From NCBI GenBank assembly GCA_004431415.1, contig QPMI01000017.1, forward strand, positions 372,001-436,000: 64,000 bases of DNA, in the 5' to 3' direction. The position numbers and the translations under genes were made by a program. The notes beneath the pieces are model-generated. The model was not told the DNA's origin. It searched no databases and worked only from the letters and a program-made list of their open reading frames with translations. The DNA comes from Cyanophora paradoxa CCMP329. Its lineage: Eukaryota > Plantae > Glaucophyta. Each line of letters starts with the position of its first letter. Position 1 is the first letter of the stretch. Below, in pieces: positions 32,215-53,300 of this stretch.

Positions 32215-35200
32215 TCAGAGGTAGAAGAGCTTCTCGGCGAGGGCGCGGAGGTGCGTCTGGTAGGCCCGGAGCGTGTCCGCGGAGGGCCCGTGCGACCCCT
32301 CCGCGTACACTGCCTCCTCGAAGCGCTGGGGGGGGGGGTAAGAGGGGGGGGTACAGGAGGGGACGAGGGCGAGGGGTACCACGGCGAGCTTCTCGGCGTA
32401 CTTGAGGGGCGCGGGGACTGCCCGGGAGGGGTCAGGGCGCGGCGCGGCCGAGAGGGGAGAGGGGGGACCAGCGGACCGCGGATGGGCCCCGCCCAACCGA
32501 AGCTGCGGCGGCGGTCAGCGAGGGTTCCGAGAAGGCGGGGGGAGTGCAGAATGGAGGGGGAAGGGCGCACTAGGCCTTGGCGAGCTCGTTGGTGGCGCGG
32601 CTGACGGTGCGCATGCCGCCGCGCACGAGCGCCGCGTCGATGGGGTCCGTCAGCAGCTCGTACCGCGTCGGCTTCGCCGCCCCTGCCGGCCCCGCGCAGC
32701 GCTCAGCGGGGGCGCGGAGGAGCGGGCCCGGCGCGCGCACCGGAGGGGGCCTTGTGGGAGATGAGGAAGAACTCGCGCTCGTTCTCCTGCGCGGGGGCGG
32801 CCGCGCGTGAGGCGGCCGAGCTGGAGGGGAGGGCGAGGGGCGGGGCGGGGCGGCCTCGCACCATGACGACCTCCTGGTCGATGCAGGTGCCGGGCTCCGG
32901 GTCGCCGGGGTCCCGCTCCTTCTGCAGGGGGCGTCAGGCGGCGCCCGGGCGGCGAGGGCGCGCGCTTGCGGCGGCGCGCACGGTCAGGTCTGCCGCAAGG
33001 GGCGCGGGGCGGGCGGCGTCAGCGCGCGCGGGGGCCGGAAGCGGCGGGCGGGGGCAAAGAGAGTAGCGGAGCACCGCCCCAGACGTTGAGATGGACCCTG
33101 CGGAGCGGGCCGGGCGGCGCTGGGGTCAGCCAAGCTCAACACCTGCCCCCGGAAATGAAGGCAGGCGCGGGCACCTCTTGGAGACGAGGAAGATGTGCAC
33201 GTCGGGGACCTTGCCCCTGGATCAAATTTAAAGCGGGCGTAAGCGGAGGATTCGCGGGAGGGCGGGCGGCGGGCGGGCGGCGGGCGGACAGGCGGAGGCG
33301 GCAGGCCTCGCGGAGGGCGAGGCCCTCGTTCCTGGCGATCGCCGCCTGGCCCCCGGCCCCCTTCGCGTTCTGCCGCCCCGCGCCCGTCAGGCTGAGGCCG
33401 CCCAGCTGCAGGCGCAGGCGGGGCCCCAGGGACGGCGCTGGCGCGCCTCTCGGTAGACGATGATGCGGGCGGGCGCCTGCGCGGCGCCGCCGGGCGCCCT
33501 GGGCCTGTTCGCCGGCGCGCGCGCCCACGCGTCGACTGCGCGGCCCATCGCCTCGGTGAGCTCGAGGACCTGCCCCGTCTGCGGCGCCTGCCGCGAAGAT
33601 TGGCGCCCGCCCACAGGCGAAGATTAACGTGAAGGGATCGGTGGCGCACGAAGGAGAGGACCTCGGAGTAGTAGGCGGCCCCCGAGTCGTCCGTCGAGAC
33701 CGTGATTGCCGCCGTGCGCGCCCTGCGGCGCACTTCAGAACACATCGAGAAGCGCGTCCGCGCCGCCAGTTCGCGGCGCACTTGACGATGGTGAGGCCGA
33801 CGTACATCGTGCCCCGCAGCTCCTCCGGCAGCTGCGGCGGCGCCGCGCCGACCGGCCACGTCAGGAGCCAGCGCGGCGAGCCGAGGGCTAGGAGAGGCGG
33901 GAGGCAGGGTGCACCGGGACCTTCCAGAGAGCCCCGCCCTCCTTGCACACGATCTGGCGGGGGCGCGCCGGGCGCTTCAGAGGCGAGCAGGGGCGAGCTC
34001 GAGGGGGCGGCAGGGGAGTCCAACCTGGCCGAGCAGCCCGACTGCGGCATCCCTCCACTTGTCGCCGTTGACGGTCCTGCCGCGAGAGACTCGCTTCGAA
34101 AAGCAGGGAAGGAGGCGGGTGCAGGAGAGGAAACCGAATCCCAGCGCACTCGGGTCTGACGAACTGGGAGGGGCACTGGAGGCGGAAGAGGAGGTGGCGG
34201 GAGAGCTCCGGGTAGAAGCCGGCGTCGTGGCGGCCCGGGAGCAGCACGACCACCGCGTCCGGCGCCCCGCCCCTCCTCGTCTCCTGCGCGCGCAACGCCG
34301 CTTCGAATTCGCCGGGAGATCGCGGCTGGAGGCCGGCGGGCAACACGCACCGCTTCGAGCGCCGTGATGAAGTTCGCGGCGGACTTCCCGCCCACCACGA
34401 CCGGCACGTTCTCCCACGTCTTGTTCAACAGCTCCTGCGTCCGCTGCGTGTGGCGAGTGCGTTTGACGCGAGCTCGAGTCTCCGGGCGAGCGCCAAGGCA
34501 CATCCGTGGGCACACACCCGCAGGAGGTCCCGCTCGATCGTCCTTGCCGTGTTCTCCGCGCCCTGCTCGTACAGGACGAAGATGCGCCGGTTCTTGAACT
34601 CCGGCGCGACCGCCGGCTGGTTCTTCCCGATCTCCTGGCGCCAGTTGATGCCGACGGACTGCCGCCCCCCGTTCCCGAACGTGAGCGTCGTCCGCGACGG
34701 CCCCACCTCGACCTGCAGGGCACGGTCCCGAGTCAGCCGGGCTGGGCAGCACGCGACTTCGACTCCGGCGCCCTGCGGCGCACCTGGAACTTGACCATAT
34801 TTTCCGCCACGGAGAGGCCCGTCTGCGCCCCGCGGCGTGAGAGATGGTGCATGGTGCCGCCCACGGGCGCGCACGGCTTCCAAGAGGGCCTTCTGTTCCG
34901 GCTCTGCTCCGAGCTGCTCGAGCCGGAATTTCTGGAGGTCCTGCGGGGGCAACGATTTGAACGTTAACGGGGTCCGGCCGGGGGCGCTGCGGGGCGCACG
35001 TCGTGCTTCCAGCGGGAGCCGCGGAAGTTGTCGCCCCGCGGCTTCGTGAACTTGGCCACCTCCCGCGTGATCTGCCGCTTGTCGCTCTCGTCCTCCGGCT
35101 TGTTCTGCGCGCCGCGTCATGATCAAATCAGGGAAATACCGATGGATGCGCAAAAGAGCACCACGCAGGCGAACTGGGAGAGCAGGAAGACCTGCGAAGA

Positions 35201-38001
35201 AGCGGGGCGATCACGATCACTACGGGAAGAAGGCGGTCGCGAAACGGATGGAGCGACGTTGCGCGCACCTCCATCGGCTCCTCCTCGAGCTCCTCGCCGC
35301 GCGCGGCGGCCTCCTTCCGCCGCTGCCGCCGGGCGAGCTCCCTCTCGTGCTCGAGCCACGCCTGCGAGGTGCGGAGCTCGGGGGCCGGCGGCTGCGCGAG
35401 GCCGTTGAGGTCCGCCGACGCCTCGATCGTCTCGACGTCCCCCGCCGCCGGCGCGCTCGCCCGTGCCGCGAACTGCTGGACGAGGCGCGCGTCCGCCTGC
35501 TGACGCGTCTCGCCGCCCTCCGCCGGCGGCCGCGGCCGCCGCCTCCGCGGCCGCGTCCAGGCCCGCAGGATCGGCTGGGTGGGGGGGTCCACGGAGACCT
35601 GCGCCGGGGTCTCGATTCCTGGGCAGAGAAAGACCGCCGAGATCTCAAACGTGACCTTGTACTCGTCGGTGACGTGCTTGCGGAACGAGACCTCCCTGTT
35701 GTTCTTGATGAACGTCCTGCAGGCGGAAACCAGGGCGTCGGCCGCGGTGGGCCGAGCTCGAGCTCAAAGCAGCGGCGCGCTGCGCGCACGACTCGCAGGT
35801 CTTCTCCCAGGCGACGGGCTCCTTCGGGTCCAGGTCGTACACGCGCTCCTGCAGCACCATGCGCCCGTCCGTCCGGTTGCAGTACCTGCGCCGCTGTGAG
35901 AACGGGCGCCCAAGCCCAGCGCGGGGAGGCGCACCTCATGTAGACGGTGTAGCCCTTGCTGGCGTAGTCCCGCAGCCTCCTCGTGAACTCGGCCCTGGCC
36001 TGCGCGGGGGAGGAGGTGGAGCGCTCCAGCTCCCTCCACTCGTCGTACGCCGTCTCTGCCGTCGGGGCCGTCGGCGGGCGCCAGATGGGACGTGCACGCG
36101 GGCGGGCGGGCGGGGCGCACGGAGGCGGAGGACGCGCCACTCGCGCTCCAGTTGGATCTGGCGGCGCGGTGAGAAGACCGGGCAGGAGGGCCGCGGGGAC
36201 GGGCGGGCGGGGACCATGAGGCCGCCCTGGGTCTTGAGGATGCTCGTGAACATGCCCTTCCTCAGCATGAAGCCGCGCACGTTGAACGCCTGCTGCGAGC
36301 GGTCCTCGATCATCTTCCGCCCGTAGCTCGTGTAGTCTGCGCGCGCGCGGCGACGTCCGTCAGATATAGATCTGAAATCGCGTGAGTTTGGTCGCTACAG
36401 CGCACTCTTTGCGTAGCTGATGAGCCGGCGGTTGGCGAGCCGCTGTGGCGGGACGAAGCGGCTTTAGTTGCGCCGGCGGCGCGGCCTCAAAGCGAGAGCT
36501 CACGAGGAAGTGCTCGCAGACTGGCTGCTCCGGGGAGAAGACGTAGTCCTTGATGTACTGGAAGTTGACCTGGATGCGGTCCCCGTCCTGCGGGCTTCTC
36601 AGCGGGCGCGGGCGCGATCGCGAAGTGGGATCGGAGGGGCGTGCCGGGTCGGAGCTGTTGGTGATCGCGCACTTGACGCGCTCGACCCTCTCGCGGACGT
36701 CCGGGAAGGGCGGGTTGACGAGGTAGAGGACGGTGGGGTTGCGCGGCGCCCGGTTCGTGAGGAGGAGCGGCTGGGGCCACTCCCGCGTGGCCTGGAGGGC
36801 CCACGGGCGCAGCCGCCTCGCGACGCCCTCGAGCGCCGCCTCGCGCATGTCCGTCCCCTCCACGTCCGGCGTCATGAAGACGGCGAACTCGAAGACCCGC
36901 GGCTGCCGCTGCTTCTCCGCCGGGGCGGACTGCGCGGGCGGTCAAGGCCGACGCCGCGCAGGCAGAGGGACGGCGAAGCACCGTCTTCCACATGTTCACC
37001 GTCACCTCCAACCTCCTGGCGCCGCCGCCCCCGGCCTCCCAGCCGCCGCCCCCGCGCCCCCCGCCCCCGCCCCAGCCGCCGCCGCCGCCGCGGCCGCCGC
37101 CTCGGCCGTGGTGGCCCCCTCCGCGGCCGCCGCCGGAGCCCTCCCCGCGGCCCCCGTATCCGGAGCCGCCGGCCCCCCGGTCCCCGCTGGAGCTCGAGCC
37201 GCCGCGCGGGTCGTACCCCCCCGGGCCTCCCGCCTCGAGCCGGGGCCGCTTCTCCTCCCGGTCGCCCCCGCGCTGCTGGCCGCGGTCTTGGTTGAGAAAG
37301 CCGCGCTCCAGGCCCCGAGGGCGATCACGGTCTTCCTGCCGCGGCTGCTGGCGCTGCTGCTGCTGATCGTACTGCTGCTGATGGGCGGGGGCGGGGGCTT
37401 GGCCGTAGCCTGGAGGCACCGCAGGGTAGCCATGAGAGGGCGGCTGCTGGCCATGGCCGTAAGCAGGCGAAGACTGCTGGGAAGCGGCCAGAGGTCCCGA
37501 AGCTGGTGGCATCTCAGTTAGGCTGGCAAGAAGCTGCTGCAGCTCTATGGCGGCAGAAAGATTTGCTGGCGGTGCTGGGCCATGGGCAGCCCCGAAGCCG
37601 CTCGGAGCGGCCGGGGCTGGCTGCTGGCCGTACGCGTGCGGCTGCGCGTACTGGCCAGCATGACCGTGCGCGTACGGCTGCTGCCCTCCGTATTGCTGCC
37701 CGCCGTATCCTTGCTGCAGCTGCCCGCCGTACGGCTGCTGTCCGCCGTATCCGTGCAGCTGCTGGCCGCCGTATGGCTGCTGCCCGTCGTACGGCTGCTG
37801 TCCATATATGTAGCCTTGTGCGTTTCCGCCCGAGCGCGAGCTCGCCTGCAGAGCACGCCATGAGCGCCGAGAGGCCGCGCGACGACGAAAGCGGGTGTCT
37901 CTAACCTGAAGTCCGGGCGGCGGATAGTGCTGTCCTTGAGCATGCTGACCAGGAGGCGCCGCCGGCCAGCCAGGCGGCGGACCATGGCCACCAGGATTCA
38001 T
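32215..38001 (-). CDS. PIWI-like Argonaute with substituted catalytic tetrad
   Basis: Q/G/Y-rich and RG-rich N-terminus, LEVTVNMW, a PAZ-like region, MID motifs FYPELSR...CPSQFV and QIVCKEGGALWKV, PIWI motifs TMYVGLT, ARIIVYRE, PGTCIDQEV, EFFLISH, AKPTRY and VPAPLKYAEKLA, ending KLFYL*. Confidence 0.85.
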
Positions 38002-38360: not shown

Positions 38361-41300
38361 ATGCCTGGGCAGCCGACGGCGATGGACGGGCGCGCGGTCG
38401 AGTCGTCATGGGCAGCACCCCAGGAGCTGAAGAATGCCTTGCAAGTCCTATCTACCCACGCGGCAGTGTTCCTGCGACGGGTTCTCATCGAGAAGCACGG
38501 AGGCGACGGAGACGGCAGAGCGGGCGTCAATGCAGGCGACGCTAACGTGAAACGCATCGCTCTCTTGTTCACCAGGAAATATGCACGTATCAAGTGCCGC
38601 CGCGTCGCAAGAGAACACTCAGAGGCTGATCGTTCTCTCGCAGGTGGAACTGCGCCTCGAGAAGATCGCGGGGGGCCGGTGCATGAGCGGCAAGCTACAC
38701 AGGACGCTCGACATCGTCGCGCTGCTGGATCTCCGCCAGACCGGAAACGCCGAGATTCATGTCGGCTGCAAGGTGTGCTGCCTCGAGTCGGCTGCCTTGC
38801 CGCTAGCTCGTCGACGTCCTGCTGACCCGCGTCTGTCTTCGAAGGACTGTGGCACGGATTTCCTTCTGCTGGCGAGCGGCCGCACCCTCAAGGACGTGTA
38901 CCGGATGACGAGGGGCCGCCCGCAGCGTGCGCACCCCTATGCGGGCCCCCGGTGGGCGCCTCACGGCGCCCCGCAGGCATGAGCGTGGACGCTGAGCTCC
39001 GGCCGTGCATCGCGGCCCTCGCGCGGGCCGTGGAGGCCTGCGAGCGCGACCCGAGGCTCTCCCCGCAGGAGCGCGACCGCTTCCTGATCCTCCTCAAGAA
39101 CGGGCGGCCCTGCGCCCCGGTCCGGACCATCAAGAGCGAGGACTGCCTGCCCCGCGACGAGCGCCACGAGCTGGCGCGCCCGCCGCACGCCGCCGTGGCC
39201 ACCCGCGCGCGGCGCCTCGCCTCTGACGCACGCGCGCGCGGCGGCGCAGTACGCGGCGCTGGGGCGGGCGATGCACGCGTACGCGCCGGAGGGGAAGGGC
39301 GTGGACCGGCACATCGGGCTGCTGCGGAAGCGGGGCCTGCCGCCGGGCCTCCTCGAGACTCTGCTCGGCAGCGAGTTCTTCTTCACCTTCGACGACCGCG
39401 CCGTGCGCGCCCGCACCGCCCGCCGCCCGCCGCCCGCCGGCGCCCGTCGCGAGGCCGGGGCGCAGGTGCCAGACCTGGAGGAGCTCGCGCGCGGCAAGCG
39501 CTGGCACATGCTCCCCGGCGTGGACGCCAGCGGCGGCCGCGCGGCCATCCCGGGCGGTGCGGCGCCGCCCCCCCGGCCCGGCCCGGTCCGCCCCGGGGCC
39601 GACGCGAGCAGGCCCGGCGTGGCGGGGCCTGTTCATCCCTGCGATGGACGCCCAGCAGCGGGTCCTGGCGGGCCAGGTCAAGCCCTTCGCCTCGACCGCG
39701 GGACCCGCCCTCAACGTCCCCAAGCGCGCCCGACCTCCGCCCCGCCCCGGCCCGAGCGAGCGCGCGCTCCTCGCCGCCTCCGCCGCGCTGACGCCGGCCG
39801 ACCAGGTACTCGACGTGCGGGGCGTCGAAGCGGATGCCGTGCTTCCTCCTCCCCGAGCTCGACATGAGCCCGCCCAACTTCGTCTGGGTCCCCGAGACCC
39901 TCCCCGGGGACCGCAGGCCGTCCGCCCCCCTCCCCGCCCCGCCATCGCCCCCGCCCTCGCCGCCCCCGCCCACGCGGCCGGGAGCACAGCTGGTTGGGCC
40001 TCACGGAGGGCGGGCTGAAGTCGGCCACCACCGCCGCCTACTTCCAGATACCCGTCTTCGGGGCCGGCATGTGCGCCCGCCCCGCCCGCCCCGCCCCGCC
40101 TGGCGGCCCCGCGTGTAAACCGGGCGGGGCGCAGCGGCTGCGGGGGCGACTTCTGCGCCTCGCTGCCCTTCTTCAGGGACGCCTTCCGCTCCCTGCAGGC
40201 CCGCTTCGGCACCAAGCACGTGCGCCGCCCTCCCCCCGCGCCCTCCGCGCCCTCCGAGGGGCCCGGCAGGTGGTCTTCTTCCCGGACGCCGGCTGCTTCG
40301 AGAACGCGCAGGTGGCGCGCCGCAACGCCGAGACCCTCCTTCTCTTCCGCGACGAGCTCGGGTACCCCGCCCCGCAGCCAGGCCGCCCCGACCCGCGCCG
40401 CCTCATGATCACGGCTCGCCCCGGCAGGGTGGAGCCGTCGGTGGCGTGGTGGCCCTGGCTCTGCTCCGCCGACGCCGACGCCGCCGGCCAGCGCAACATC
40501 GGTCCGCCCGCCCGCCCCGCCCTTCGAGCTCCGCCCCGTCGCTGCGCTCTGCCCTCTCCGAGCGCGCAGACGACTCAGCGACTTCGTCCGCGGCGCAGAC
40601 GACTTCCTGGCGAAGGTGGTGAACTTCCGGGGCGTGCAGCTGATCTCGGCGGGGAGCTTCTGGGCGACGCACGAGGCGGCGGCGCGGGACCCGAACCTCG
40701 GCGACGAGCTCCGCCGGCGCCGCCTGGAGGCCTGGGAGGCCGTCGTCGCCGCCGTCCCCTCCGAGGTCCCCCCGCCCCCTCCCGCCCCGCCCCGCGCTGC
40801 GCCTCTTCGCTTAGCCGGCCCCGCCCCGGCGCAGGCGCAGCGGACGCGGAACGTGGCGCCGCCGGCCCCGTGGCTGCTGCGCGTGTACGAGCCGATGGCG
40901 GAGGGCGCCGAGGGGGCGCTCACCGTGTGCGAGGTCTTCCCGGAGGGCGCGCCGCCGCCCATCCAGCACCGCGAGCCGCCCCGCCGCCGCCCGCCCGCCT
41001 CCGGCTCCGGCGACCTCCTCGTCGAGAGCTCCGCCCCTCCGCCGGCCCCGCCCCTCGCCCCGGTGACCGCGCCGACCGTCATCACCCACGTGGCCATCCA
41101 CCACACCGTGCGCTCCGCCCCGGGCCCGCCTCGCCTCGTCCGCCCCCCGGGGCCTGACCCGCCTCCCTCCCGCAGCCGCCGCCGAACGGCTGGCACCCGC
41201 AGGGGCCGGCGCCCGACCAGTCGGGCGTCAGCGTCGCGGCCTGGCAGCAGCAGCCGTACTCTGCGCCCGCGCAGCCGGCGCCGATGGAGGCCCAGCGCTG

Positions 41301-44300
41301 GGAGCCGCAGCCGCCCGCGCAGTACACCAGCGGCAGCAGCAGCGGCAGCAGCGTCAGCAGCGGCGGCAGCAGCAGCAGCGCGCCGGCGGCGGGACAGCCG
41401 GCGGGGGCGGGGGCAGCGCGGCAGCCGGCGCATCGGCGCGTCTCGTTTGCAGAGGGCGGGAGCGGGGCGGGCGGCGAGGCCGGGCCCGGGGCCGGGGCGC
41501 GTACCGGAGCGTGCCGCTGGCGTACGGCGACGACGGGGAGCCGCGGGGCGGGGGCGGCGGGCGCTCGCGGGCGGGGCCGTCGGGCCTCGGGAGGCGGGCG
41601 GGGGCCCCGCCGGAGCACCCGCAGGCTTCCAAGCGCTCCTGCCCGCAGGCCCTCTCCGAGGCAGAGGTGAGAGGGCGGCCCGCCCCGGGCCCCGCGGACG
41701 CCGACGCCGCCGCCGACTCGGCCGGGCAGCAAATCGAGCGGGCGCTGCGGGCGTCGCTGAAGGAGAAGGAGGCGCTGGAGCGGCGGCGCGCCGCGGAGGC
41801 CGACGAGGCCGAGGCCTTTGGCGATCTCGAGGAGGCACCCGCCCCGCCCCGCCCCGCGCGCGCCCGCCGCCGACGCCGCCGCCGACTCCGGCGCGCAGGA
41901 GCTGGAGCGGGCGAAGCGGGAGTCGCTGCGGGAGGCGGAGGAGCAGGCGCGGCGGCGGGCGGAGGGCGCGGACGACGCGGAGATGGAGCAGCTCAGCGCC
42001 GTCCTCTCGGAGAGCGAGCGCCTCCACCGCGAGGAGCAGGAGCGCCTCGCCGCCCAGTGCGCCTCGGCCCTCCCGGCCTGGCCCGTCCCGGCCCGTCCCG
42101 CTGACGGCGTTGGGTCGCGGGGGCAGGGCGGCGGGGGAGGAGGAGGCGGAGGTGGAGCTGGCGAAGGAAAAGAGCGCGCTGGCGGCGGTGGAGGAGGCGG
42201 AGGTGCGGGAGGCGCTGCGGCTCTCGCAGGTCCCCGAGCGGCTGCGGCGGGCCGTCGAGGCGCAGTTGGGGCGGCGGGCCCCCGCCGGCCCCGAGGCCTA
42301 CCTCGACCTCGACGACCTGAGGGACGGCGGCGGCGGCGGGGGCGGCGGGGGCGGCAGCAGCGACGAGGAGGCGGGGCCGACTCGGACGGCGAGGAGCCGG
42401 CCTGGCGCTGCTCGGACGCCGCCGCGGGGGCCGGCGCCGGCGCCGGCGTCGGCGTCGGCTGGCTCCCCGCCGCGGCCGCCTCTCAGCCCCACGGGGAGGA
42501 GGAGGCGCTGCCCGCCGCGCCGCACACCCTCACGGCGTTCTCGAGCGGGGCGCGGCCGGCGGCGGCGGGGGGCCGCGCAGGGGGCGGATTACGCCATGAT
42601 CCGGCTGGAGGCGGCGCAGCGGATCATGGAACGCCAGGGCTGGCACCCCGGGGAGCCCCTGGGGCGCCGCGACCGCCCGGACGCCCTGGGCCCGGGCGAC
42701 GTCGTTCCCGTCGCCGAACACGTGGCGGGGCAGCTCGACCGCCGCGGCGTCGGCGTCCCGGGGCCCCTCGTCCGCGCCCAGCCGGCCCCGCCCCCGTCCC
42801 CGCGCGCCCTCTCCCCGTACCCGCCGAGCCGGCTCCCGCCCCGCCCCCGCCCCCGTGCCCGTGTCCGTGCCCGGGCCTTCCGGCTATGGCGAGCCGGCCC
42901 TGCCGCCCCTCGCCGGCAGCTTCCACCCCGCCGCTCTCGCGCCCCCGCACGGAACCGGCCCCGGCTTTGCCCCCGTCGCCGCCGCAAACGCCGCGGCGGC
43001 GGTGCCGCACGGGGCGGGGGCGGCGGGCTGCCGGCACCCGGCGCAGTGCTGCGCGCGGCTGCACGCGCTGGAGGCGCCGTTCGTCGCGCTGGACGCGGCG
43101 GTGCGCTGGGCGGCGGTGCTGGCGATGCAGGCCGAGGTCGAGGCCGCCCTCCGCTGGCTCCTCTTCGCCGCCTGGCTCGCCCACCCGCCCGCCCGGCCCC
43201 CGCCAAGGCCCCCGCCCCGGCCCCGCCTCCCCTGCCGCACTCCTGCCCGCCCCGCGCCCCGCTCCGATCGTCCCTCCCGCGTACCCCCCTCCATCAGCGG
43301 CCCCATCGAACCCCCGCAAGGGGCCTCATCGTACCCCCCTCCAGCGGCCCCATCGTACCCCCGTCAGCGGCCTCATCGCACCCCCTCCAGCGGCTTCATC
43401 GTACCCCCCGCCAACGGCCTCATCGTACCCCCCTCCAGCGGCCTCATCGTACCCCCCTCCAGCGGCCCCATCGTACCCTCCGCAAGGGGCCCCATCGTAC
43501 CCCTCGCAAGGGACCTCATCGTACCCCCCGCAAGGGGCCTCATCGTACCCCCCGCCCGCGGTCGCTGCCTCTTTTCCTCCGGCGTACCCCCCGCCAGCGG
43601 CTCCCCCGTCCTGGGCCGTCGCGGCCCCCGCGGTGCCCGCCGTCGCCGCCCCTGCGCCCTCCCCGGCGCTCCGGGCTCCCCGCGGGCCCGTCCCGGGTCC
43701 CTCCTCGGCTCCCGCTGTACCCCCGCCCGCTAGGCCGTCGGCGGCGGCGGAGGCGGAGGAGCGGGGTACGCTCTATGCCCACGAGGTCATCTTCGACCCC
43801 CCGATCTGCGTGCGCCTCCGCCCCTGCCCCTTGCCCCGCCGCGCCCGACCCCGCCCCCGCAGGCTTACCCGAAGGATTACCTTGGCGGGCGGGCCTTCCG
43901 CACGTACCACCTCCTCACGCGGGAGCCGCTCGAGGCCCCGCTCGAGGCGTTGCCCGTCGAGCGGGGCCCGCCCCGCCGGGTGACGCTGCGGCCGCTGGGG
44001 CCCGTCGAGCTGGGCGCCCGCGAGCTGGCGGCGGTCCGCCGGCTGAACGCAATGTTCGACGCGCGGCTCCCGGCGGACAAGAAGGACCCGAACTACGGCT
44101 ACATGCCGCGCCACGCCGGCCGCCTCGCCTCTGACCCGGACCCGCCGCTCCTCTCCCCGCGCTTCGCCGCCCCCGGGGCGCCCTACGACGAGCCCGAGCT
44201 GCGGGACGAGGCGCTGCAGGCGGCGCTGCTCGAGGCGGCCGCCGGCTTCGCGGCGGGGCGGCCCCGCGTGCTCGAGCTGCTCGCGGCGCAGGAGCGGGAG

Positions 44301-47119
44301 GGGCCGGGCGGGGCCTGGCGCCCCGCCCTCCGCGCCCTGCTGGAGGACGCGCTGGTGCGGAACGAGCACAGCGGGCAGGTGCACCCCATCGGCCGCGTCG
44401 ACTTCGAGTCCAGCGTCGCCTCGTGCCGCGCCTTCTCGGGGCCCCGCGCCCCCCGCACCACCCTCGTCGAGTACTACGAGGCCAAGGGCCGCAAGGCGGA
44501 GGAGGAGGAGCGGGCGCGCGGCCTCGAGCCGCGGCCCCGGCCCCGCCTCCGCTTCCCCCGCTCCCCGCCCCTCCGCGAGTCCGAAGCCGGCTCCGACGCC
44601 CGCGTGCGTTCCTCGCCCTCGCACCCCGGCCTGCGCCTCTGACTCCCCCTCAGATCGCCCCGGAGCTCTGCGCCGTCCACACGGGCATCACCGGTGCCCC
44701 CGCCCCGCCCCACGCGCCGCCCCGCGCCGACGCGCACTCGCGCGCGGCAGCGTCGATGCACGACGGGGCGGCGTGGCTCCTCGACGGCCTCCACGTCCTC
44801 CTCCAGCGCTCCGCCGCCGCCGCCGTGCGCCCTCTTTGCTCGAGTCCTGAGGGGTGGAGGGTCCTGACGCGCCGGGGCAGGCGGTGCGGCGGGTGCGGGG
44901 GATGCTGGGGATGGGCGAGCGGCCCTTCGCCCGCCCCGACCTCCTCGCCGCCGCCATGCGCCACAGCAGCGCCCGCGCGGAGGCGCCGGCGCCGGCCGGC
45001 GGGGCGCCGGCGGCTGCGCCCGGGGCGGAGGCGGACAGCGAGCGGCTGGAGTTCCTGGGAGACCGCCTGGTCGCCTACGTCGTGCGGCGCGCCCTCGTGC
45101 TGGGCCTCCCCCGCCTCTCCGCGCACGCCGCCGCCGCCCTCTCGCACGAGCTCTGCCGCAACGCGACCCTCGCCCGCGCCGCCGCCGCCCTGGGCCTGGA
45201 CGAGGCGCTGGAGCGGGGCAGGGGCCAGGTCGCCGCCTCCGAGAAGATGCGCGCCGACGCGCTCGAGGCGCTGGCGGGGGCGCTGTTCCTGTCGGAGGGC
45301 CTCCCCGCCGCCCGCCGCTTCCTGCTCGCCGCCCTCCTCGCCCCCTACGAGGAGCTCGACCCGCGGGCGCCCCACGCGCACAAGGTCTCCGCCCTCGCCC
45401 GCCGCGCCCTCGCCGCCGCCCCGGACGCCCCGCTCCCCTCCCCCGCCCTCCCCGCCTTCGCCCCCGCCGGCGGGCCCGGGGCGAGCGAGGCGGAGCTGCA
45501 GGCGGCGGAGTTCGTGGAGCAGACCGTCGGCCACGCCTTCCGCGACCGCGGGCGCCTGCTCGAGGCGCTGCGGGGCGGCCCGGCGGCGGCGCGCCTGGCG
45601 GCGCTGGGCCAGCCGGCCCTCGAGCTCTGCGCCGCCGTCCACCTCTTCGGCTCCCACCGCGGCGAGGCCCCCGGCGGCCTCCAGGACCTCATGCGCGTCG
45701 CCGTCCAGGCGGCCCCGATCCGCGCCCGCTGCGCCCAGACGCTCCTCCTCCCGGGGGCCCTCGCCGCCGCCCGCAAGGGCCTGGGCACGCCCGAGGCCTC
45801 CGCGGAGGGGGCGCGGCTCGCGGACCCCCGCGCCGTGTACGAGGAGGGGGCCGGCCAGGGCGAGCTCGTGGGGGCGCTGGCGGCCCTCGCGGGGGCGCTG
45901 GCCTGCGAGGGAGAGCCGTCGCTCTCCGCCCCGCCCCCCGCCTGCGCCCACTGCGCCTGCGACCTCCCGGGGCACCTCTTCCACAAGTGAGCCGCGCGTA
46001 CCCCCTCCGGCCCCTCCCCCCTCAGCCCGCCTCCCCCGCAGGCTGCTGGCGTGGATCCACCAGGGGCGGCTGGACCCCGGCGAGGAGAACAGGGCGGCCC
46101 GCGAGGCCCACATGCAGGCGCGCCCGCCCTCGCCCCCCTCGCATTTCCCCGCGTGCCCTGAGGCGTCGCGCTCCGCGCGTGGCGCGCAGGAGCCGATCGA
46201 GGGGTGGCAGGCGGCGGGGATGTCGCCCTTCGGGGCGTACGTGCCGCCCTACGAGCTCCCCACCGAGGCCGAGGCGCGGGAGGCGCAGGCGGCGGCCGAG
46301 GAGGCCCGCCGCGCCGCCGCCCGCGTCCGCTTTGTCCCCGCCACGGGCTCTGGCTCCTCCTCGGCGGGCGCCGGCGCCGGGGCCGGCGGCGGGACCCGGG
46401 GCGCCGCGGCCGCCCCCACCGGCGCCAACGCCACGCCCCTCGGGCCGGCCCGGCCCCGGCCCCGTCCCCGGCCCCGGCCTCCGCCCCGACCCCGCTGCCG
46501 CCCGCCCCGGAGCCCTCCGCCGCCGCCTCCGCCTCCGCTACGGCGCCCGCCCCGTCGGGCGCGGCGGGGATGCTGGGGGCGGCGCTGGAGGCGGCGCGGC
46601 AGGTGGCCGACCTGCTCAACGCGGGCCTCAGGGGCGGCTCCCTCCCCCCGCCCAGGCCGCCCCCAAGTACGCCGCCGCCGCCGCCGGCCTCCGGCGGGCC
46701 CTGCGCGAGTGCGGCGGGGCGGGCCCGTGCGGGAGGCGGCGGGGAGCTGGGCGGCACCTCGTGAACGCCGCCCTCACGGGCGTGAGGGGCGGCCTCGTGC
46801 CGCAGGCCGAGGCCTGGGCCCGCGAGGCCGTCGCCGTGTACGAGGGCCTACCCGCGGGCGGGGCGAGGGGCGGGCGAGGCGGGCCTGGAGGGGCGCGCCT
46901 GCAAGGCCTGGTTCGTCCTGGCGCGGGCCCTCGAGGCGCAGGGGCCCGGGCGCGCGGCGGAGGCGGCCGCCGCCGCGGGGCGGGCGGCCGCGCTCCGGCC
47001 CGAGGACGGCGACGCGGCCGCCCTCGCCCGCCGCCTCGCCGCCGCCGCCGCCGCCGCTGGGGCCTTCCGATGAGGCGCTCTGGGGCAAGGTGGATCCGCT
47101 CTATTTTGCTTGCAAATAG
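38361..47119 (+). CDS. Dicer-like protein with N-terminal primase-like TOPRIM domain, UIM-like repeats, G-patch, platform-PAZ-connector, RNase IIIa and degenerate RNase IIIb
   Basis: TOPRIM-like LGLTEGGLKS...VVFFPDAG...VAWW...NIDD; UIM-like EQIERALRASL and EVREALRLSQ; G-patch AQRIMERQGWHPGEPLGR...DRRGVG; PAZ/connector LEDALVRNEH...TLVEYYEAKG...IAPELCAVH; RNase III SERLEFLGDRLV...ADALEALAGALF. No AT-rich intergenic gap lies inside, but several low-complexity segments need extra introns or frameshifts. Confidence 0.75.
43270..43560 (+). repeat. About 21-bp coding minisatellite encoding S-S-Y-P-P-P/Q-A/G heptads inside the Dicer-like gene
   Basis: Repeated cctcatcgtaccccc(t)ccagcgg/gcaaggg units, translating as ASSYPPPTASSYPPPAASSYPPPAAPSYPPQGAPSYPSQGTSSYPPQG. 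Confidence 0.85.
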
Positions 47120-47577: not shown

Positions 47578-47740
47578 CTTGCGCAGCGCGACGCTTTTCG
47601 TGTTGAACACATGTGCGCCGCTCGTACCCCCCTCCCGCCCCCCCTCCCCGTGTATCCCTCACATTCCCCCTCCCCGCCTTCAGACTACGATCCGGACCCC
47701 GGCAGCGTACACCTCTCGGGGGGAGACTACGTGCGTTCCC
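47578..47740 (+). pseudogene. Isolated duplicated fragment (two micro-exons plus intron) of the K+ channel gene
   Basis: Near-identical to 50916-51078 (cttgcgcagcgcgac(g/a)cttttcgtgttgaacacat...ggagactacgtgcgttcc) with scattered substitutions. It is followed by a poly-C run of about 59 nt. Confidence 0.8.
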
Positions 47741-47741
47741 C

Positions 47742-47805
<64 letters not shown>

Positions 47806-48088
47806 AGCCCCCCGCGACAGCCCCGTCAACAGGCTATCGTACTCATGTACATGGCCCGGTGGCCACGTGCACTGGGGCCTTGATGAGCTGGCCACCATCA
47901 AGCGATGAAGGACCGGCGGCCGATGATCACGGATTCAGGGAGTCATGATCATGATCATGAAACCGTCGGACCAGCGGGCAGTCCCCAAGCTCTAAGTCTG
48001 CCTTCGTTGCTGTCTACAGATCGAGAATCACACTGTGACATGCATGCAAGTGCCGCAGTGCGTGGCCGCTGTGATGCGGGGGGAGGGG

Positions 48089-50304: not shown

Positions 50305-53300
50305 ATGTCGGCGCCGCAGGCCTTCAACGACCTCCCGAGCTTGGTGCGCGGCGCTGCGGGCGCTAGCTAGAGCGCAGGCCCGCCCTCGTGTGCCGCAGCG
50401 TGCGGCCCGCGCCGCCGCGCCCGGCCCTGCTGATAGCGAGCCGCCGGCCCGCCCGGCAGGCGCGGGTGGCGCTGATCTCCCTGTGGGTCTTCCTCGGCGT
50501 CGGGGTAGTCGCCTTCGCCGCTGACCTCACCTCCCAACCCCACGTCCGCCCCCCCGCCCCGCCCCGCCCCTCCGCCCTCTGCAGCTCCGCTCGAGCCGGC
50601 TCCGCGCAGCGCGTCTCCGCGAGCGACAGGCGGACGCGGGCGCGCTTCGCGAACCAAAAGACGGTACCCCCGCCCGTCCATTCGCTCGCGCCCGCCGGCG
50701 GCGAGCCGAGCGCCGCAGGCCCGCGAGATCGCCGGCCTCCTCTTGCGCGGTGCCGCGTACCCCCCCTCCGCCCCGCCCCCTCCCTCACGCCCCCACCAGA
50801 CTCCGCTATCGGCCGAGCCTGGTCCCTCTGCCAGGGCGCCCTCGCCCTTTTCAGGTCCGCCCGGCCCCGGTACCCCCCTGCCGCCCCGCACCCATCCCAT
50901 ACCCCCCCCCTCCTCCTTGCGCAGCGCGACACTTTTCGTGTTGAACACATGTGCGCCGCTCGTACCCCCCTCCCGGCCCCCCTCCCCGCGCATCCCTCAC
51001 ATCCCCCCTCCCCGCCTTCAGACCACGATCCGGACCCCGGCAGCGTATACCTCTCGGGGGGAGACTACGTGCGTTCCTCCCCCCTCCCCCCTCCCCCTCT
51101 TCCGCCTTCGAATTCGTCTCTTCTTCTGACATCGTGCGCAGTTCGTCGTGCACATACAAGTACCTCCCCTCTCATCTACCCCCTTCTCCTTGCCCCTGAC
51201 CCCCCCCCCCGGCAGCCGCTCATCGAGCTCGTGATCAGCTTCCTCTTCTTCGGAGACTACCTCGTGCGGACCCGTACCCCTCGAACTCCGTACCCTCCTT
51301 GCTGAATCCCCCCCCTCTCCGCCCCAGATCCAGCTGTACCTCGCCGACATGCGGTCCGCCCTCTACCGTCTCTTTCGCCTCCCCTCCGGTCCCCGAGTCG
51401 GGGCGGGGCAGGCTCCTCTATATGCTGCAGCCGCTCGCCATCCTCGACTTCATCACCTTCGCGCCCACCGTGCGCCCCGCTCGGATCCAATCTGATCCAT
51501 CTGATCCGTCTGATCCGATCTGATGCGACCCGCGGCAGATCGTGACGTGGCTGCTGCTGGAGGGGACCTCGAGCCTCTCCTTCGTGCGCTTCCTGCGGAT
51601 CACGCGGGGCCTGACCCTCATGAAGACCTCCGTCTCCGGCTCCGTCTTTGCCCTCCGCCGCGAGGACGGCGCGCCCCTCTTTCCTCACCCCCTCCCCTCC
51701 CCGCTCACCGCCAGTCTCTCTTCGCGCAGACACGCGGCGGCAGATGCGGATCCTGGTCTTCACAGTGGCGTGCCTGCTCTTCATCTCCGCCTGCGTCATT
51801 CACACCGTCGAGACCTCCCTCTCCCCCGAGGGGCACTGGCGCGCCCCTTTCCGTTCCCTTCCCTTCGGATTCTAAGAGGCGCGCAGGCTCGACAACTCGG
51901 GGCGAACGGTCGCCTGGGTGAGGGCGCCCCCTTCGCCCTCGCCTCTCCTGCAGCGCTGACGCCCCCTCTCTCGACCCCGCCCGCAGCACGACAGCCTGTA
52001 CTACCTGTGCGTGCCCAGCCCACTCTCTTTGCGTATAACCCCCGCGTACCCCCCCCCCCCCCCGCGGCTGACGCTGCGTGCTACTCGCAGATTTGTCACC
52101 GTGCGGCCGCCGCGGGGGCCGCCGCCCCGCTCCCCCTCGCCCGCCGCCTCACGCGGCCCTGCCTACCCCTCAGATGAGCACGGTGGGGTACGGCGACATC
52201 ACGCCGATGACCTCCCTCGGCCGCGCCGTGGCGATCGCCATCCGTGCGCCCGGGCCCGCGTGGCGCCGCCGGCCCTCGTGCCGCCTCACCCTGGGGCGGG
52301 GGCAGTGGTGGTGGCGTTCACGGCGGTGCCGATGCAGCTCAACAAGCTCCTCGCCCTCATGCAGGTGCCGCGCTTTATGCTTAAGCTCAAGCTCGAGATC
52401 CAGCGTCCTCCTCGCCTTCCCATCCGGCGCCCCTCTCACCGCCCCCGTGCAGATGCAGACGGCGTGGTCGCGCCCCGCCGCCCTCAAGCGCAACCAGCCC
52501 CACATCGTCCGCCCCCGCCCCCCGCCCCCCGCCCCCCGCCCCTCCCCTCACCCCGCCCCGGCCCGGCAGATCGTGTGCGGGCAGCTCAACTTCAACGCCG
52601 TCGCCGACTTCCTCGTGCGCGCCGCGTACCCCTCTCCCGCGCGCCCCTACCCCCACCTGACTCTCTCGTCCCTTCTTCTTCAGACCGAGTTCTTCCACAA
52701 GGCGGGCCCCCCCGCCCCCGCCCGCCCGCCCCGCCCCCCTCCTACAGGCCCTGACTCGAAAGAAATGAACGCGCAGAACCGGACGGAGAACGCGCAGTAC
52801 AAGGTCATCTTCCTCTCCAGCGAGGAGCCCAAGCGCGAGACCGAGGTACCCCCCGCGGAATAGATCCTGAGCGATAAGATGGAAATGAGAGAGGCCTCGG
52901 GCTCTAGATCCAGCTCCCATTCAATGATTAGATTCAAGCGGGAGTAGATTAGTTTTCAAGCGATAAGATTCAAATTAGAGAGGCTTTGGGCTCTAGCTCC
53001 CTCCGGCCGACGGCGCGCGGAATAGATCCTGAGCGTTACGATTCCAATTTGATCCAAGGAAGCGGCTCTAGCTCCCTCTAACCGACGGCGCGGGGGCCGC
53101 GGGGCCAGGTGCTGGTGACGTCGGCGCTGTACGGGAAGCGGGTGCAGTACCTGGTGGGGACGCCCCTCATGTACGAGGACCTGTTGCGCACGCGCCCCGA
53201 GCGCGCCCGCGCCTGCTTCCTCCTCGCCAACAAGGGCGCCGCCGACCCCGACGAGGACGACCGCGGTGCCCCGCAGCCCCTGCCGCTGCAGCTTCTTCCC

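Follow-up and report, generated by a model that had tools for sequence, protein, structure and literature searches.

Does the glaucophyte alga Cyanophora paradoxa CCMP329 encode a Dicer-like protein in which a primase domain of bacterial type takes the place of the helicase? The question is raised by a window of 64,000 nucleotides of its genome (contig QPMI01000017.1, positions 372,001 to 436,000), in which the original prediction, made from the letters alone, had recognized a TOPRIM domain at 38977-40665 fused to a Dicer. All coordinates given here are those of the window.

An intron-rich gene model

Using the unspliced frame 39988-40500 as the query of an exhaustive HMMER search, we recovered the EukProt Cyanophora paradoxa model tig00000093_g3555.t1 (P0078), which puts the primase domain and the RNase III region in a single protein of 2263 residues, encoded at 38361-47073 on the plus strand with ~28 introns. 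A wasp repeat protein returned by the same search (P0079) is a chance match. The window has a GC content of 70-80% and its introns are short; a human or viral source of this DNA was ruled out. The motifs quoted in the original prediction lie where it placed them, on the plus strand, in one open frame joined across short introns: removal of 13 introns of 50-97 nt from 38644-41500 (+) leaves an open frame of 653 residues. The public model was made independently and follows the same splice path except at two donor sites. It begins at 38361, three exons upstream of 38977.

RNA evidence came from spliced contigs of three sequencing runs that we guessed to be RNA. These RNA-like contigs confirm the junctions 39723>39806, which has a GC donor, and 40763>40833, and they cover the exon 40270-40360. 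GC-AG introns are frequent in this gene, occurring at 39174, 39724 (39724-39805, the RNA-confirmed case), 41835 and probably 42505. An additional candidate GC donor at 39917 was ruled out because the RNA exon extends to 39919, with a GT donor at 39920. Searches with the spliced domain used parts of the public model, and for the window the queries were single exons or single frames.

A DnaG-type primase core

Many searches of the primase part were blank. Exon-wise Pfam scans, word-index homologue searches, a phage search, PHROGs and NCBIfam searches, a single-sequence query of the PDB, and searches of metagenome contigs and of encoding contigs gave no match; the ESM Atlas gave none with an unspliced frame, and tblastn of unspliced pieces against plasmids gave chance matches only. 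With the spliced domain (aa 205-500 of the public model) as the tblastn query against 72,556 plasmids, 19 records were found (best E 7e-7), 17 of them cyanobacterial, and three are named as CyRepA1-family replication proteins. A profile built from seven of the cyanobacterial plasmid proteins aligned to the algal domain by hhalign over 261 columns with 99.2% probability (E 3.6e-19), and the same profile gave the algal domain 62.8 bits, while none of 2000 shuffles exceeded 3.9 bits, placing the likeness far above chance. When run on the unspliced six-frame window, its best match was the exon with the PDAG motif (40240-40365). Since the seven proteins had been chosen via the algal query, more family members were fetched with a cyanobacterial query; a profile of 32 members, with the algal sequence left out, still gave the algal domain 60 bits.

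The fold was addressed by structure prediction. DUF3854, Toprim and DnaG clusters independently rank first in the ESM Atlas (0.95-0.96), and an AlphaFold2 model of the algal domain computed with the homologue alignment reached a pLDDT of 74.5 and a pTM of 0.78. Foldseek placed S. aureus DnaG at the top for this model (E 1.9e-5), and the first 21 rows were all primases. VIA-align matched it to B. subtilis DnaG with Z 14.4 (rmsd 3.7, 255 residues); DnaG polymerase cores gave Z 12-14, topoisomerases at most 8 and RNase M5 only 5.9. These two comparisons identify the domain as a complete DnaG catalytic core and not a TOPRIM domain alone. Judged by the modeled structure, the algal protein certainly contains the whole DnaG-type primase RNA-polymerase core, made up of the N-terminal subdomain and TOPRIM (aa 195-510; 39126-40696, plus strand, split by short introns). 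The predicted TOPRIM/DnaG fold is supported, in a domain that is larger than first proposed.

The algal core and bacterial DnaG (S. aureus 4edg, B. subtilis 5guj, E. coli 1dd9) have the same two-subdomain fold over ~250 residues, and the R, KY, EG, first D and distal D are conserved in the alga. Identity, in contrast, is only 10-14%, and the alga has D-A-G for DxD and lacks both the zinc-binding domain and the helicase-binding tail. Unlike its bacterial counterparts, the algal core is eukaryotic, intron-rich and set inside a Dicer-like protein.

Active-site residues and the N-terminus

Among 21 columns that are invariant in 32 homologues, 17 are kept in the alga although overall identity is ~26%, which implies selection on the active-site face. 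The kept invariant residues include R238, Q313, Y330, K377, D428-A-G, W460 and D478; K329 and E373-G374 are kept likewise. R238 of the L..RG motif (39331-39333, +), invariant in the homologues, is the equivalent of the conserved arginine in the N-terminal subdomain of DnaG. The role of that arginine has been described (PMC6755086). The TOPRIM catalytic glutamate motif, E373-G374, is encoded at 40006-40011 (+), and D428-A-G lies at the DxD position (40285-40293, +), its second Asp replaced by Gly as in 32 of 32 homologues. The VAWW strand and the distal acidic motif (D470 or N476, D478, D479) span 40441-40603 (+) and are split by an intron at 40502-40598. D478 is kept among the distal acids, and whether D470 or N476 fills the first distal position depends on an 8-residue insertion.

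TOPRIM enzymes have an invariant Glu and a DxD motif, to which primases add distal acids (PMC6755086). Of these, the alga has the Glu and one distal Asp; in its DxD the first Asp is present and the second is Gly. The acidic residues had been described as intact, which is correct relative to the cyanobacterial family but not relative to DnaG. Q463, K466 and the NGEL motif mark family-conserved positions that are changed in the alga. Activity of the algal core is plausible.

The region upstream of the core (aa 1-194; 38361-39125, +) has no family match and a single CxxC (aa 116-119), and the GC content of these N-terminal ~190 residues is lower than in the rest of the gene. A four-cysteine zinc ribbon, present in 33 of 34 homologues, was not found in the algal protein.

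Relationship to plasmid replication proteins

The nearest relatives of the algal domain are Rep-like plasmid proteins of Acaryochloris, Calothrix, Tolypothrix and Synechocystis (pSYSX), whose N-terminal domain is the part that is alike, with 22-30% identity over the whole domain and the motifs in the same order. In the plasmid proteins a zinc ribbon precedes the domain and ~800 residues follow it, with a helicase in those classified; the alga lacks both ribbon and helicase, and its primase core is followed by an RNase III module. The NCBI name "CyRepA1 family" carried by some of these homologues rests on the helicase region (NF042913), which is present in two of them. Scanned pieces of tig00000093_g3555.t1 gave no match to NF042913 and contain no Walker A or DExH word.

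The relatives had been expected to be DUF3854-like cyanobacterial plasmid or phage proteins, and of this the plasmid kinship stands while the family assignment does not. PF12965 (DUF3854) has no match in tig00000093_g3555.t1 at E up to 10, nor in any of 33 aligned family members at E up to 1, whereas the control Slr7037 matches at 3e-50. Slr7037 (CyRepA1) itself is only remotely alike: the comparison gave a probability of 4%, and Slr7037 scored 2.3 bits with the profile of the nearest homologues. DUF3854 membership of the algal domain was therefore ruled out, and these results make the relatives a separate primase subfamily carried mostly by cyanobacterial plasmids. CyRepA1/DUF3854 is still TOPRIM-related, its EG, D and distal D align loosely with the algal domain, and the ESM Atlas neighbors of that domain carry DUF3854. 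Slr7037 is needed for plasmid replication (PMC9978351), and the DUF3854 domain has been described as of unknown function (PMC10079941).

Most cyanobacterial members score 30-57 bits against the algal domain by blastp. Three Firmicute members score ~0 bits by phmmer with the algal domain and 46-64 bits with the cyanobacterial-domain profile; we assign these plasmid proteins (L049, L050 and L051), on their sequences, to the same wider primase group, further out. They carry a fused CHC2 zinc finger or YodL, and AAA ATPase genes adjoin in two cases. No other eukaryotic homologue appeared among the matches listed, which does not imply absence.

Comparison with cyanobacterial homologues had been suggested as a check, and in the resulting tree the alga falls on a long branch among cyanobacterial rows (support 92/85), in a sampling that is mostly cyanobacterial. 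This position is no proof of the donor. We favor a cyanobacterial source, from which the domain may have come by endosymbiotic or by later horizontal transfer.

Linker and nuclease half

Between the two catalytic parts the gene encodes weak UIM-like helical repeats (41730-42235, +; UIM_2 E 0.087), with a strong coding signal, and a weak G-patch-like motif (42614-42670, +; 18.8 bits against a cut-off of 22, E 0.0015), with an RNA-like contig at 42632-42795. An array of 11 tandem 24-nt copies encoding a Pro/Tyr/Ser-rich 8-mer follows at 43295-43561 (+) and carries homopolymer assembly errors.

The ~300 residues before RNase IIIa resemble, by pattern, what we take to be a Dicer platform, a PAZ-like region and a connector helix. 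This putative region (43765-44824, +) lies on an RNA-confirmed exon chain and had no Pfam or PDB sequence match; phmmer was likewise blank. A single-sequence AlphaFold2 prediction for the nuclease half was of low quality (pLDDT 40). Foldseek gave it weak matches, with Dcr-2, DCL4, DCL3 and mouse Dicer among the best (~90 columns, E 0.2-1.3) and bacterial RNase III absent from the best 50 rows, and a VIA search with the same model gave nothing informative.

RNase IIIa (aa 1663-1749; 45040-45300, +) is a clear match (Pfam E 1e-16, 86.7 bits), with E1666, D1670, D1735 and E1738 intact and with matches to bacterial RNase III, Drosha and Giardia Dicer. RNase IIIb (45505-45888, +) is degenerate, scoring 6.9 bits against the 86.7 of IIIa (E 0.062 alone). 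It has lost the four acidic residues, whose positions are taken by A1849, Q1853, E1937 and G1940, the latter two assigned by eye. RNase IIIb is thus predicted to be catalytically dead, leaving IIIa as the only intact site. Directly after RNase IIIb there is a Cys/His cluster (CxxCxC..H..H, 45950-45990), possibly a zinc site where a dsRBD normally sits, and a helical region near the C-terminus (46660-47070, +) looks TPR-like by eye, with no profile match.

Neither a RIG-I-like helicase nor DUF283 nor a dsRBD was matched by Pfam in tig00000093_g3555.t1, and helicase motifs were not found. A close architectural parallel is Giardia Dicer (2ffl), which has no helicase and places a platform/PAZ-like region ahead of its two RNase III domains; the algal IIIa matches it at E 3e-7. 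Compared with canonical Dicer and DCL proteins, the alga adds an N-terminal primase core, UIM-like repeats and a G-patch, whereas its IIIb is apparently dead, its PAZ is undetected by profile and no dsRBD was found. The label "Dicer-like" is justified; membership of the canonical Dicers is not.

One gene or two

The claim of a Dicer fusion that replaces the helicase is sustained insofar as both parts lie in the same gene model and helicase motifs are missing, but no single transcript was found among the contigs listed. On the primase side RNA-like contigs leave the primase end through 40763>40833 and extend through part of the linker to at least 41322, and on the nuclease side they join 43587-43809>43863-44603>44881-45340. 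None of the listed contigs spans both halves, with 41430-42632 and 42795-43587 left unbridged. Contig depth over the gene is low (~3-7), and it is zero at 43341-43540, inside the tandem array, the only such bin.

The same stretch is troublesome in the DNA. The frame is broken at short runs of G or C at 41494-41497, 42377-42381, 42812, 43310, 43357 and 43380, and a DNA run has one additional C relative to the assembly at each of the last four, so at least some of the frame breaks in the linker stem from the assembly. The public model contains at least one invented intron here, 43584-43752, which was ruled out because RNA covers 43587-43809. The public protein model is wrong in the linker, and the assembly carries homopolymer errors.

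Could a gene predictor have merged two neighbors, a primase-UIM-G-patch gene and a helicase-less Dicer, across this error-rich repeat? The missing bridge among the listed contigs and the zero depth over the array would fit, as would the invented intron and the three RNA contigs that begin at 43587-43615. However, DNA contigs break at the array too, one of them starting at 43524, and the linker does not look like a gene boundary: its codon bias is that of coding sequence up to ~43200, its GC content stays at 0.69 or above throughout as against 0.41-0.45 at real 3′ flanks, no A/T-rich 3′ signal was seen in it, and from the array to the platform-like strands no ATG is in frame. With the frame breaks at four sites traced to missing C bases as well, we consider a merger of two genes improbable. 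The public model, the coding signal and GC content of the linker, the lack of an ATG and the RNA splicing from both sides lead us to infer strongly that the primase and nuclease halves lie in one gene and protein, and a primase-Dicer fusion in C. paradoxa is likely.

No TOPRIM-Dicer fusion had been known to the original prediction, and the literature that we searched for TOPRIM-Dicer, glaucophyte Dicer-primase and unusual Dicer architectures, which takes in few subscription journals, describes none either. A 2013 paper reported one Dicer-like BLAST match in C. paradoxa without giving its architecture (PMC3700990).

An Argonaute-like neighbor and the small RNAs of the alga

A divergent gene on the minus strand (32215-38001), starting ~360 nt from the start of the primase-Dicer gene, encodes what we take to be an Argonaute/PIWI-like protein, with MID/PIWI motifs recognized by eye; exon-wise Pfam and PDB scans of its short exons were blank. 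By eye, its first catalytic Asp is Thr, the next Asp is Glu and the last His/Asp is Glu, and the protein may therefore not slice. Its N-terminus is long, Gln/Gly/Tyr-rich and RGG-rich. The small RNAs of C. paradoxa are mainly 21 nt, strand-biased, often antisense, unphased and exonic, and were tentatively ascribed by the authors to four RdRP homologues of the alga (PMC3700990).

Possible functions of the fusion protein

The reading that we prefer, with a probability of about 35%, is that one fusion protein, encoded by a nuclear gene, makes guide RNAs and then trims them. The primase core would build or extend an RNA strand on a single-stranded template, either the DNA of a mobile or invading element or RNA, and the PAZ-like pocket would hold the 3′ end of the new RNA while RNase IIIa cut that strand once, at a fixed distance from this end. 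The cut would remove the 5′-triphosphate end to yield a 5′-monophosphate guide of ~21 nt, the dead IIIb would leave the template uncut, and the guide would pass to the Argonaute-like product of the head-to-head neighbor gene. This reading is favored by the DnaG fold with its retained residues, the intact IIIa beside a dead IIIb, the evidence for one gene, the 21-nt strand-biased small RNAs (PMC3700990) and the Neurospora QDE-1/qiRNA system, a functional precedent for starting RNAi on DNA, in which RNA made by a polymerase on DNA feeds Dicer and Argonaute (PMC2950127). Dicer IIIa is also known to cut the strand whose 3′-OH end is seated in PAZ, independently of IIIb (PMC8138440). The analogy to QDE-1 is one of function only: QDE-1, a two-barrel polymerase that exists as a protein of its own, has no homology to the algal primase core.

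Several points weaken the make-then-trim reading. DnaG normally cannot prime de novo without its zinc ribbon and the second DxD aspartate, both missing in the alga, DnaG products are shorter than 21 nt, and RNase III enzymes favor dsRNA over RNA:DNA hybrids. The PAZ region is without a significant match, none of the listed contigs covers both halves and RNA depth falls to zero in the array. Even with no primase-Dicer, the small RNAs could be accounted for by the four RdRP homologues, and no activity has been shown for the primase family, cyanobacteria included (PMC10079941).

Alternatively, the fusion may be real but its primase core may no longer polymerize, instead binding single-stranded nucleic acid or nucleotides, replacing the substrate sensing of the lost helicase and steering a dsRNA nickase to particular substrates. 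The change of DxD to D-A-G, the loss of the zinc ribbon and the altered Q463, K466 and NGEL motif all fit such a role, and non-catalytic TOPRIM domains exist (PMC6755086). We nevertheless find it rather unlikely: E373, D428, D478, R238, K329-Y330 and K377 are all kept, and the D-A-G form, common to all 32 plasmid Rep-like homologues, need not mean a loss of activity. A metal-dependent TOPRIM nuclease, as in RNase M5 and OLD, could supply a second cut or end trimming in place of the dead IIIb, and primases, RNase M5 and OLD have a common active-site blueprint (PMC6755086); this has a low probability in our view, as the fit to DnaG cores far exceeds that to RNase M5 and topoisomerases, and more than 1000 mostly low-complexity residues lie between the two sites. 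A dead IIIb, an uncertain PAZ, a long low-complexity linker and the low RNA depth might also mark a decaying chimera, or a protein with a role outside small-RNA silencing (R-loops, rRNA or organelle replication). Against this stand the open frames and strong codon bias of both modules, the precise retention of catalytic residues and the Argonaute-like gene head to head, and we judge it similarly improbable.

The fusion extends known Dicer architectures. It would represent the domestication of a replication domain from bacterial mobile elements, which now has introns and the codon usage of its host and belongs to the RNA-silencing apparatus of an early-diverging relative of plants, and it is a first handle on the activity of the uncharacterized cyanobacterial D-A-G primase subfamily. 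If the primase is active, the protein offers a testable answer to how guides are initiated on DNA, or amplified with no RdRP involved, and it is a candidate source of the unphased, strand-biased 21-nt RNAs. It is a tentative, rather doubtful idea that one protein, assembled from a cyanobacterial plasmid primase and a half-active Dicer, acts as a complete small-RNA factory, copying ssDNA (or RNA) and trimming only the new strand into an Argonaute guide with the template intact; if true, RNA silencing could be entered from DNA with neither an RdRP nor the dicing of dsRNA. Downstream of the gene, a non-coding element that includes a long C run is repeated, with copies at 47620-47830 and 50950-51130.
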